A stretch of DNA of 64,000 nucleotides from Epithemia pelagica (lineage: Eukaryota > Protista > Bacillariophyta). The notes beneath the pieces are model-generated. The model did not search any database. It saw only the letters and a program-made list of their open reading frames with translations, and was not told the origin of the DNA. Every line of letters begins with the position of its first letter. Position 1 is the stretch's first letter. A program made the translations under genes and the position numbers. The DNA is taken from assembly GCA_946965045.2 (NCBI GenBank), contig OX337231.1:744001-808000 (forward strand). Direction: 5' to 3'. This document shows positions 24,014 through 27,565 of the stretch, in pieces.

Positions 24014-25384
24014 ATGGTGGAACACGTTCCATTTCGTGTCGGCAATACGTGCAAGGAGATTCCGCATCGTCTGGCTAGGCTTAGTCGCAATGGACGACAT
24101 CGATTGATTCATGAATGGGAATTATATGTCGAGATTTTGCCCGATCAAGGCGGTGATCCCGATGTGATTGCCAGTGTGATTTTTGATTTGGGAACAAGCT
24201 TTTATCCACAATCCTATGTGTGTACCTGTCCCGTTCCGGCGGCCAATGGAGCCTGGCGCTTTGTGACGAAACAACAAAGTTATGGATTTCCCAACGCTAC
24301 CATTACGGTCCGTGGACGTGGTGGTACAAGATACGATACGACCTACGTCGTGGAAGCTTATCATGCAGAGGAAACGGTTGTTCATACCTTGGAAGAAGCG
24401 CGTACCTTACGCCCCTGGACCTATGTCAAACTCGCCGAATCTCAAAAATTTGGCATTGAATTGGAACTTAGTTCGTCCTTACAGACCGAACCACGTCATG
24501 TCGCCGACTGGTTGACTGCTCACGCTGGTGTCGGCCCGGTCCTGGTCCTGGTGGACCAGTATGGTGCCGGTCGTTCCACTCGACCGGAATGGAAATTGGT
24601 CCCCGATGCCAGTATTGCCTGTAGTCCCTCGCAACCCGATTGCCACAAGTTTGAACTGGTATCGCCCATTTTACAAGGTGGCGAAGGCCTGTCACAAGTC
24701 CATCGCGTCCTCAAGGCCTTGCAAGACGTCTCGATCAAGGTGAACAAATCCATGGGCTTTCATGTTCACATGGATGTGGAGCAATTGTCCTTGGCCGAAC
24801 TCATCAAGGTATGTCAAAATTTTGTCAAGTACGAAGACGTGATGGATTCCTTTTTGCCTCCTTCGCGTCGGACGGGCAGTGACGAATCCAATCAGTACTT
24901 TCAAAGCAATCGTCAATCGGTCGGACGATCCAGCAACAAGGACCGTCACACTCGCATTGCACACTGCCATTCTCTCGTGGCCTTGGCCCATGTCATGAAT
25001 GGCACTCATACCAAGTATTACAAGTTGAATTTGCAATATTTAAAATCCGGTCGACAACCCACCTTGGAATTTCGACAACATTCCGCCACGGTCCAATACG
25101 ACAAGGTCAATGCCTGGATTCGCTTTTGCAGTGCCTTGGTTTTGAATTCCGCCCGTTTGGCGTCACCTCGATGCTTTGCCCGCCACGACAAACCCTTGGA
25201 AGATCAGTTTGATTGCTTGTTTCACTATGTCATTAAGGACCGTGGCTTGCGAGAGTTTTATCGCGAACGACAAGAACAAGTGGAGACTAACACCAGTTCT
25301 GGGGATGCTGCTTATCATGAATGTGACGAATGTGCTCAAACGGGTGGTACCTGTTGTGCCAACGCCGCCAAGCGATTGCAGTAG
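24014..25384 (+). CDS. YEATS-like domain fused to a putative amidoligase (Amidoligase_2, COOH-NH2 ligase fold)
   Basis: N-terminus FRVGNT...HEWELYV...IASVIFDLGTSFYP...FVTKQQSYG (YEATS pattern); then KFGIELEL, WKLVPDASI, FELVSPILQG, VNKSMGFHVH, YYKLNL, TLEFRQH (amidoligase motifs). Confidence 0.8.
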   Translation: MVEHVPFRVGNTCKEIPHRLARLSRNGRHRLIHEWELYVEILPDQGGDPDVIASVIFDLGTSFYPQSYVCTCPVPAANGAWRFVTKQQSYGFPNATITVRGRGGTRYDTTYVVEAYHAEETVVHTLEEARTLRPWTYVKLAESQKFGIELELSSSLQTEPRHVADWLTAHAGVGPVLVLVDQYGAGRSTRPEWKLVPDASIACSPSQPDCHKFELVSPILQGGEGLSQVHRVLKALQDVSIKVNKSMGFHVHMDVEQLSLAELIKVCQNFVKYEDVMDSFLPPSRRTGSDESNQYFQSNRQSVGRSSNKDRHTRIAHCHSLVALAHVMNGTHTKYYKLNLQYLKSGRQPTLEFRQHSATVQYDKVNAWIRFCSALVLNSARLASPRCFARHDKPLEDQFDCLFHYVIKDRGLREFYRERQEQVETNTSSGDAAYHECDECAQTGGTCCANAAKRLQ

Positions 25385-25849
25385 AGGGCAACACTCGACA
25401 AGGGTGATAGACCTGTTGACATGGGTTCATTGATTTGGGTCATGTCTTGGCTAGCGCTCCATGTCTCATTGGGGTTGTATAGATATATAGTGAGAATGGT
25501 ATACATACAAACAATTCCAGCTACTTGATATTTTACTATATATAAAAAGGACAAAAACGTTGTTGTTGTTGTCGTCGTCGTCGTTTTCCCCTTTCGAGTG
25601 ACTGTACACCGTCGCGGTTCCACAACCACTTTTGGCAATCGAGTGGATCCTGTCGGCAGTACGTTTTCTACTTTTGGTTGCATGCATCATGCACGTAAAG
25701 TATACATACTAATAGAGAGAGGTAGAACAATAGGTGGTTGCCACCATTGGCATGCAAACAAGTATATGTAAATACACAAGAAGAACACAAAAACCATGGA
25801 ATGCAGAGAAACCAGCAAACTACCACCACCCTTTTCCTCTCACAGGAGC

Positions 25850-27565
25850 TTAACACACGAGCGTGGCTTCGGTACCGGCCGTGGTGGGAATGGACCGAAC
25901 TTCGACATAGTTTCGATTGGCACGATTGGTCCACCAAGATGCGTTCCATCGCAAGGTCCCGCGACTCCACTTGTAAATACAATCCGCCACCCATCCCGCC
26001 AAGGCACCATAGTGTGTCTTTTTGGTTCCCAACACGACAATGGCCGTCAAGAGTGCCACCGCCATGCGATCTTTCAAATCAACCGGCGACGATGGATCCG
26101 AGGGTGGCGTTTGTGGTGGTGGTGATGGTTGAAGACTGTCTTCTTCCGGTGAGGCTGTGGAGGATACTGAAGTGGCATTGCTTCCACTGCGAGCTCGATT
26201 GGCACACCCTCCAGTTGTTGTTGTTGTCGTTTGGTTCACCAACGACAAGCGGAGACCGGTCGACGCCAATTCATGTCCAGCCATGGTCAACATGACGCCC
26301 AAAATGGAGACGGGAAAGGCATCGAGCATGTGCATAACCGCGGCCCCCAACGTGAGGGCCAAGATCATTTTGAGACTGCCCAAAAAGACAATGGCGGCAC
26401 CATGACGAGCGCCCAATTGATGTTGTCCGGCCAAACCACCGGCACCATGACAATTGGGCAACCCTCCCAAGGGACAGGCCAACAAATTCATGATTCCCAC
26501 CGAAAAGGCCACTTCGCGACGACTCAGTACACTGTCTAGGGACTCGCCCGCCATGCCTTCTTGAGCCTCGGCGTCACCGTCATCCTCAGGCTGTCGTTTT
26601 TCGGGAAACAAGGTATGGGCCAAGGCACAAACGGAAATGACCGAATTGAGTGTCGTCAAGGGCAATTGCGGAATGGCACCTTCCCAAAATCCCACCATCC
26701 AATCCTTGAAGGAAATGTCAAACAAGGTCCACGTCAAGACGGGTTCCCAGGCCCATCCCTCCTCGTCATCAGCTTGGTCGACGGAGGACGACGACGCAAC
26801 GCCTTGCAGGGCAAATTTGAACAAGCCCAGTGCACCGGCCACAAGCAAGAGATACAAGCCCACGGGCGACGGCAATCGTGTGGTCGACGATCCTCCTCCA
26901 TCTCGGGCGGCGGCCGCAAGGGGCCGCAATCCATAAATGGTTCCCACGGCGGCCACGAGGGCCATGAGGATACAATCGGGATCGCTCACCACGGGCAATT
27001 CCAAGAGTTTGCCAATGCCATGAATGGCCAAGGACATGCCGACACCGAGTTGCATCCCGGCCACGACCGATTTGGGGACAATCCGATTGACCCATTCAAT
27101 GCCATTGGTGGATCCCAAGGCGACCATGAATCCACCCATCCACATGCCCGCAGCCGTAACTTGATGGCGACTCAAGCCTTGGGCAATGGCCAAGGCCGAA
27201 ATCGTTTTCATGGGTTGGACGGGCATGGGAACATCCCACAAGAAGCCCGTCAAGACATTGGACAACCCGGCCAAGAAGAGGGCGGGGGCCACATAAATGG
27301 AGCGTTGTCGTCCCAAGGCGACAAAGAGAGGAATAAAGGTTCCCAAATCCCCCGCACTCCCCGACAATTCGTGCAGAGACAATTGAGACCACAACACCTT
27401 GGCACGATGAAACAAATTCGTCTCAGTGTCATTGTGTCCATGGCTGCTGTTATTATTGTCAATGGTACCATTGTGAAGAGGATGATGAATCGGAGACACG
27501 GACCGGTCCGTTCGAGTTTCGAGTGGCACTGCAGAGAGATTCGACCAAGGTGGAATGAGGAGCAC
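25850..27565 (-). CDS. Molybdate transporter, MOT1/MOT2 family
   Basis: ELSGSAGDLGTFIP, PMPVQPMKTI, QLPLTTLNSVI, CHGAGGLAGQHQLGAR; multiple hydrophobic helices. Confidence 0.9.
   Translation of the reverse strand: MLLIPPWSNLSAVPLETRTDRSVSPIHHPLHNGTIDNNNSSHGHNDTETNLFHRAKVLWSQLSLHELSGSAGDLGTFIPLFVALGRQRSIYVAPALFLAGLSNVLTGFLWDVPMPVQPMKTISALAIAQGLSRHQVTAAGMWMGGFMVALGSTNGIEWVNRIVPKSVVAGMQLGVGMSLAIHGIGKLLELPVVSDPDCILMALVAAVGTIYGLRPLAAAARDGGGSSTTRLPSPVGLYLLLVAGALGLFKFALQGVASSSSVDQADDEEGWAWEPVLTWTLFDISFKDWMVGFWEGAIPQLPLTTLNSVISVCALAHTLFPEKRQPEDDGDAEAQEGMAGESLDSVLSRREVAFSVGIMNLLACPLGGLPNCHGAGGLAGQHQLGARHGAAIVFLGSLKMILALTLGAAVMHMLDAFPVSILGVMLTMAGHELASTGLRLSLVNQTTTTTTGGCANRARSGSNATSVSSTASPEEDSLQPSPPPQTPPSDPSSPVDLKDRMAVALLTAIVVLGTKKTHYGALAGWVADCIYKWSRGTLRWNASWWTNRANRNYVEVRSIPTTAGTEATLVC

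Follow-up and report, generated by a model that had tools for sequence, protein, structure and literature searches.

A gene joining a YEATS-fold domain to an amidoligase in Epithemia pelagica and other diatoms

A two-domain gene shared among diatoms

The stretch of the Epithemia pelagica genome analysed here (contig OX337231.1 of assembly GCA_946965045.2, positions 744,001 to 808,000, 64,000 nucleotides in all and referred to below as the window) carries a gene in which a YEATS-fold domain is joined to an Amidoligase_2 catalytic domain within one open reading frame (ORF) (Table 1). A stop codon lies in frame two codons 5’ of the ATG. The preliminary description of this DNA had read a series of motifs in the frame, and every one of them was recovered in the 456-residue product. 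The N-terminal part holds VGNT (residues 9-12), HEWELYV (33-39), VIFDLGTSFYP (55-65) and QQSYG (87-91); the ligase part holds GIELE (147-151), DASI (198-201), ELVSP (214-218), GFHVH (248-252) and EFRQH (352-356); and the C-terminal end holds the Cys-containing ECDEC (436-440) and TCC (446-448). This degree of motif agreement is far beyond chance. No further copy of the gene was found within the window.

The gene belongs to a large family. Word-based searches returned at least 374 relatives, and the best 120 share 41-51% identity with the window protein over 91-100% of its length. The fusion of YEATS and amidoligase domains is present in 117 of these 120, the remaining three being short models. 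All of the relatives that carry a name come from diatoms (Mayamaea, Seminavis, Cylindrotheca, Fragilaria, Chaetoceros, Amphora, Epithemia, Synedropsis and Bacillariaceae), and we use “diatom-restricted” in the sense of restricted among the relatives found by the searches made here. The ESM Atlas cluster that contains the protein is 95% Eukaryota, with Bacillariophyta commonest, and bears the automatic name “YEATS domain-containing protein”; PF12224 is assigned to 98% of it, PF03366 to 19% and PF20305 to 11%. Several relatives derive as complete transcripts from transcriptome projects, which shows that the family is expressed. The two-domain architecture is a conserved diatom family. Two Cylindrotheca fusiformis paralogues (P0046 and P0063) lie on the same scaffold as gene numbers 20 and 22, suggesting local duplication.

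The preliminary description also called the ORF intronless. This is supported indirectly, by colinearity over the full length with complete transcript-derived orthologues and by the absence of contig joints within the gene. In the four sequencing runs that cover the locus the contigs are DNA-like and differ as alleles do, and none has a joint inside the gene. Contigs of all four DNA runs break at 24951-25006.

Domain folds and the acyl-lysine pocket

On its predicted structure the N-terminal domain is a YEATS-type beta-sandwich, an assignment that is decisive by fold and weak by sequence in the window copy. Modelled alone with AlphaFold2, the domain forms eight strands at a predicted local distance difference test score (pLDDT) of 93.7. 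Compared with 48,161 PDB representatives, independently of Foldseek, its eight best matches were all YEATS domains (Z 10.9-13.7, root-mean-square deviation (rmsd) 2.3-3.4 Å), running from YEATS2 (6lsd, Z 13.7, rmsd 2.3 Å over 117 residues) to Sas5 in eighth place (Z 10.9), and the first match outside the YEATS fold was a generic sandwich at Z 7.6. The YEATS fold is supported both by Foldseek and by a second pass with VIA. Failure of the domain to model as a YEATS sandwich had been named beforehand as one result that would refute the proposed reader-writer enzyme; the model and its eight leading PDB matches came out as YEATS.

The sequence evidence is graded differently. The window protein matches Pfam YEATS (PF03366) at 17.4 bits (E 0.004, residues 32-73; 14.2-17.5 bits across scans), below the gathering threshold of 22 bits, and matches pYEATS (PF20305) at 12.4 bits, below the threshold of 26.9 bits; an NCBIfam scan of the window protein gave no match. 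Because the Pfam matches are sub-threshold, a YEATS call from the window copy alone would be unsafe. When the N-terminal domains of 23 orthologues were scanned singly, 19 matched YEATS at E<=0.01 (best 1.2e-8) and 19 matched pYEATS (best 6.9e-10). Orthologue P0047 passes the YEATS threshold at 26.4 bits, and some orthologues come near or reach that for pYEATS. Profiles built from the family match the PDB chains of AF9, ENL, YEATS2, GAS41 and TAF14b at E values of ~1e-3 to 0.5. Profile matches to designed Cake propellers and to a PQQ protein were rejected as spurious, being repeated short matches to the WRFxT motif. The motif WRFxTRQ (residues 78-90, nucleotides 24245-24283) resembles the blade motif DGTEKWRF(K/D)T that recurs in PQQ and designed ‘Cake’ propellers, and this likeness yields misleadingly low whole-sequence E values in PDB profile searches.

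The diatom domains share with the eukaryotic YEATS proteins (AF9/ENL, YEATS2, GAS41/Yaf9, Taf14 and Sas5) the eight-stranded Ig-like sandwich, the HDW signature of strand 2 and the Ser/Thr-Phe pair of the acyl-lysine loop. They differ in having about eight extra residues between strands 4 and 5, in conserved RFxTRQQ and RGxGGT motifs that are peculiar to the family, in a basic surface charge, and in their fusion partner, an enzyme absent from all canonical YEATS proteins. Near-invariant positions in the N-terminal domain include R25, R82, R86 and Q87 together with the RGxGGT turn, and across 95 family N-domains the median isoelectric point (pI) is 9.7 and the net charge +6. In the model strand 1 begins at residue 3, which leaves no room for an N-terminal signal or transit peptide.

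A HMMER alignment sets the family’s FDLG(S/T)(S/T)F opposite FHLHESF of AF9, and K-x-H-D-W opposite F28-T-H-D-W, so that the pocket can be compared column by column over the 95 N-domains. The column of AF9 H56 is Gly in 75 and His in 4, while S58 is matched by Ser or Thr in 86 and F59 by Phe in 91. The column of F28 is Lys in 88 of the family domains and Leu in the window copy. The loop after strand 5 has Tyr in 74 of the 95, followed by Gly in 80, and from its place in the model Y90 is probably the equivalent of AF9 Y78. The amide-clamping residues thus aligned look retained, and two walls of the cage are replaced. The earlier observation that the pocket is diverged holds for the first loop, where GTSF aligns with HESF of AF9 and H56 gives way to Gly. 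The companion suggestion, that SYG stands in place of GWG, is read from the position of the loop in the predicted fold and gains nothing from sequence alignment: the larger family profiles aligned with PDB chains over positions 8-76 only, leaving the Y78 loop outside the aligned span, a profile limited to the latter half of the N-domain had no sequence match in the PDB, and a phmmer search of the PDB with one orthologue N-domain had none.

The second domain is a clear Amidoligase_2 domain, bearing out the full motif set first read from the sequence. Its PF12224 match (122.8 bits, gathering threshold 22 bits) spans model positions 2-245 of 245. Across diatom and bacterial members the motifs GIELE, DxS, FELVSP, GFHVH, SRR, KxN and EFRQHS do not vary, and by this motif set the domain is predicted to be catalytically intact. 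Its fold matches the YbdK-type structures 1tt4 (Z 12.9, 241 residues aligned) and 1r8g (Z 12.7), glutamine synthetases (Z ~12.8) and Dop of the Pup system (9cku, Z 12.2); Foldseek supports the glutamine-synthetase/GCS2-type ligase fold. All of these, and PafA, have the fold of an ATP-dependent carboxylate-amine ligase. Sequence identity to YbdK/GCS2, glutamine synthetases and PafA/Dop is only 5-13%, and the comparison with the diatom enzyme is one of fold, not of the use of glutamate or a protein lysine. Searches against viral models matched phage and giant-virus amidoligases at E values down to 3.5e-15. A 2009 survey by Iyer et al. is said to have defined these amidoligases.

The two domains are joined through an ordered linker. 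A full-length AlphaFold2 model built from a 25-sequence alignment has a pLDDT of 87 and a predicted template modelling (TM) score of 0.86, with disorder confined to the last 28 residues, and F126 and E128, just before the linker, are near-invariant in the family. The C-terminal helical extension of the ligase is conserved among diatoms and, in part, in the bacterial relatives as well. Beyond it, 95 of the 116 full-length members have the Cys motif CCxxC-x5-7-C after an acidic stretch, so the Cys-rich tail noticed at the outset is a family feature; the window copy has a shifted version that still contains four Cys and one His. A zinc knuckle and a lipidation site are both possible readings of the motif. 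A basic K[KR]x[KR] patch, resembling a nuclear localisation signal (NLS), follows the Cys motif in 21 of 115 members (background ~0.013 per 20 residues); the window protein ends in KR only, with no clear NLS. One transcript-derived orthologue (P0062) has a RING-H2 finger (residues 472-514) after the Cys motif.

Bacterial relatives and genomic setting

A scan of bacteria and archaea, at one genome per species, found 151 loci with relatives, nearly all covering query residues ~143-420 only, at 31-38% identity. Members of PF12224 from phages, bacteria and conjugative elements have all of the conserved motifs in a catalytic domain of that similarity, and the phage proteins share the fold. The bacterial proteins, in contrast, are ~300-327 residues long and are without the Cys tail and the 10-20-residue insert that diatoms have after PPSRRTGS. 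Where the diatom proteins have the YEATS domain, they have a conserved helical N-terminal module of ~55 residues with a motif like TKxxK...LG.TR.E.A...G.GYGF..NV (for example L002:3818-3990, L064:3788-3970 and L013:3659-3850), for which Pfam gave no significant match (HTH_58, E 0.05). The profile of the diatom N-domain matched none of the ORFs of 80 fetched bacterial loci out of the 151, and no IMG/VR viral contig was found to encode it. Among the gene neighbours in bacteria are ParA-type ATPases and a C5 DNA methylase, a setting suggestive of mobile elements; these neighbourhoods gave no indication of what the substrate is.

Bacterial pYEATS domains (PF20305) belong to the same fold superfamily as the diatom domain, and diatom orthologues match them as strongly as noted above. 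They differ from it in structure, with ESM Atlas TM scores of 0.58-0.64 for pYEATS fusions as against 0.71-0.73 for eukaryotic YEATS clusters, and also in their fusion partners (TIR, DUF4062 and metallophosphoesterase) and in the taxa that carry them. The simplest history would be that the diatom lineage took up a bacterial or phage-type amidoligase, which was then joined in that lineage to a YEATS domain of eukaryotic type. The YEATS domain would have replaced the short helical N-terminal module that is seen on the closest bacterial amidoligases, which are borne by mobile elements.

A 98%-identical protein is encoded on a syntenic 184-kb contig (L081), and this identity together with the synteny indicates the same locus in another assembly or haplotype. 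The two copies differ at 10 synonymous and 8 non-synonymous codons. Cys13 (24050-24052) and Tyr342 (25037-25039) of the window protein are Tyr and Asn in the second assembly and in nearly all family members, and these differences could be allelic, could lie between strains or could stem from errors of assembly. In the family tree the pair sits on a branch of 0.73, long but not exceptional.

The gene converges on a molybdate transporter gene downstream. Contigs of two runs skip 77 bases (26131-26209) within the transporter gene, a length not divisible by three; an indel between haplotypes or a small intron may account for it. The 3’ intergenic region common to the two convergent genes holds a simple repeat, which is read as a Thr run in an antisense ORF. 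Upstream, the syntenic gene on L081 encodes 501 residues with DUF8361, so the shorter ORF of the window may be part of a longer or spliced gene.

Table 1. Coordinates of the YEATS-amidoligase gene, its parts and its surroundings, in window positions
Feature	Position	Strand	Evidence
Whole gene, single ORF of 456 residues plus stop codon	24014..25384	+	More than 100 diatom orthologues align end to end, 41-51% identity
YEATS-fold domain, residues 1-130, eight predicted beta strands	24014..24403	+	AlphaFold2 pLDDT 93.7; VIA-align Z 13.7, rmsd 2.3 Å to YEATS2 6lsd
Loop LGTSF, residues 59-63, opposite AF9 LHESF	24188..24202	+	HMMER profile alignment to AF9 chains
Loop QSYGF, residues 88-92, after strand 5; putative counterpart of AF9 G77-Y78-A79 / GWG loop	24275..24289	+	Lies between model strands 81-89 and 94-101
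Ordered linker between domains, residues 131-142	24404..24439	+	pLDDT ~94 over residues 121-150
Amidoligase_2 catalytic domain, residues 143-376; GIELE, PDxSI, FELVSP, GFHVH, PPSRR, YKLN, EFRQH	24440..25141	+	PF12224, E 2.8e-35
Helical extension of the ligase, residues 377-428, with conserved VIKDR...FY helix	25142..25297	+	Helices 395-407 and 410-425 in the model
Disordered acidic linker, four-Cys motif (HECDEC...TCC) and short basic end	25298..25381	+	pLDDT 38
Upstream ORF, 381 residues	22579-23724	-	No Pfam match
Simple repeat	25551-25595		
Downstream convergent gene, MOT1-type molybdate transporter	25850-27565	-	PF16983, E 3.4e-56

Possible functions of the fusion

We propose, at what we judge to be an even chance, that the protein is an ATP-dependent amide ligase directed at proteins and aimed by its YEATS-fold module. 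The fold family suggests that the ligase would activate a carboxylate with ATP for attack by an amine, giving an amide, and the fusion suggests that the YEATS-fold domain would select or hold a macromolecular substrate or product. The likeliest partner may be a protein in which a lysine bears an amide linkage, by acylation or through an isopeptide bond, or else an acidic segment, and the enzyme would write its amide-type modification in the nucleus or cytosol. A YEATS domain suits the holding of a ligase product because joining a carboxylate to lysine gives acyl-lysine, the ligand of YEATS domains. PafA shows that this fold is able to ligate a glutamate carboxylate to a protein lysine and, with the match to Dop, points to a fold able to act on protein lysine. 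We count the RING-H2 orthologue, the Dop-like fold, the NLS-like patch of some members and the lack of a targeting peptide as hints of a protein-modification context. Among protein targets chromatin is the leading candidate, as a candidate only; a chromatin role is plausible, and within the protein-directed proposal we rate it as rather unlikely.

Several observations weigh against this proposal. Literature searches turned up no Amidoligase_2 member with a defined substrate, so the step to a protein substrate is one that we infer. Two positions of the acyl-lysine cage are replaced (H56 by Gly and F28 by Lys), and the basic charge of the N-domain fits an acidic partner, or an acyl group that bears a carboxylate, at least as well as it fits a basic histone tail. 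Soluble ligands are the proposed targets of the bacterial pYEATS domains. A lipidation or membrane signal would account equally well for the Cys cluster beside basic residues. For Epithemia pelagica itself no RNA run covering the locus was found, the covering runs being DNA-like only. Finally, the window copy departs from the near-invariant Y13, K31, D34, D40, R86 and F126 (it has C13, L31, E34, E40, K86 and L126), and its N-domain pI of 6.6 is the lowest of the 95; the window copy is the most divergent of them.

It is possible that the enzyme instead makes a soluble amide, such as a gamma-glutamyl amine or a modified amino acid or polyamine, with the YEATS-fold part serving as a ligand-binding, regulatory or oligomerisation module instead of reading marks on proteins. 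We regard this as a serious possibility, short of probable. The nearest solved folds are those of metabolite ligases (YbdK/GCS2, glutamine synthetases and 1-naphthylamine glutamine synthetase), bacterial pYEATS domains are described as ligand sensors and are also found fused to enzymes such as metallophosphoesterases, and the acyl-lysine cage is altered at two positions. However, the N-domain is structurally closer to the eukaryotic YEATS domains that read histones than to bacterial pYEATS, and it keeps the Ser/Thr, the Phe and probably the Tyr that clamp the amide. The RING-H2 finger of one orthologue and the NLS-like tails of a subset likewise point to protein targets.

The strict version offered in the preliminary description is that a classical histone acyl-lysine reader brings the ligase to chromatin for the addition of an amino acid or amine to histones. 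Fold scores of up to Z 13.7 against histone-bound YEATS structures, the lack of a targeting peptide and the basic tails of a subset agree with it, whereas the His and Phe of the cage are replaced and the N-domain carries a basic charge. No clear NLS is present in the window copy, which ends only in KR, and we found nothing that ties the protein to histones. In this strict form the idea seems unlikely.

Less likely again is that the reader half is degenerating in Epithemia pelagica, the ligase continuing to work while the N-domain has lost its ancestral ligand. The six substitutions of the window copy are unique or rare and its pI is the lowest in the family sample, and non-synonymous differences from the second assembly are nearly as many as synonymous ones (8 vs 10). 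Yet the domain still models at pLDDT >90, with F57, F63, Y90 and G101-G104 intact, and the second assembly has the conserved Y13 and N342, so some of the changes in the window may be allelic or errors. A role in conflict or defence, with a domesticated mobile-element amidoligase coupled to a YEATS-like sensor of a viral or stress-derived ligand in the way suggested for bacterial pYEATS systems, is very improbable: bacterial relatives adjoin ParA and C5 DNA methylase genes in a mobile-element-like context, amidoligases are common in phages and giant viruses, and pYEATS is listed among prokaryotic immunity sensor domains, but the diatom family is stable, with every named diatom among the matches, moderate branches and mostly one lineage per species cluster, and it is without the rapid turnover typical of conflict genes or any IMG/VR viral contig that encodes the N-domain.

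Returning to a protein-directed ligase, it is tempting to speculate on a narrower form of it, which we hold to be a long shot. The enzyme might be a writer that, driven by ATP and independently of coenzyme A (CoA), places an amide such as a gamma-glutamyl-type isopeptide on protein lysine, and its own remodelled YEATS pocket might read the product. The Gly that replaces His would open space in the pocket, and the conserved Lys would meet the carboxylate. If so, the protein would write and read, in a self-reinforcing manner, a chromatin or protein mark that is confined to diatoms and was not known before.

Automatic annotation calls the relatives either “YEATS domain-containing protein” or “Putative amidoligase enzyme”. 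No description of a YEATS-amidoligase fusion was found in the literature searched, the 2009 survey by Iyer et al. lying outside that search, and the amidoligase literature matches were otherwise phage genome notes and citations in reference lists only. The fusion is best described as a real, conserved and uncharacterised combination of domains whose component kinds are known.

In summary, a domain fusion that is fixed across diatoms would offer a concrete handle on the role of the largely unstudied Amidoligase_2 family. To our knowledge, YEATS domains are known only as non-catalytic readers in chromatin complexes. Diatoms are genetically tractable, so the predictions made here are directly testable. 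The presence of the fusion across diatoms suggests a candidate way of chemically tagging proteins, and bears on whether eukaryotes have an ATP-dependent route to lysine-linked marks that is independent of acyl-CoA.

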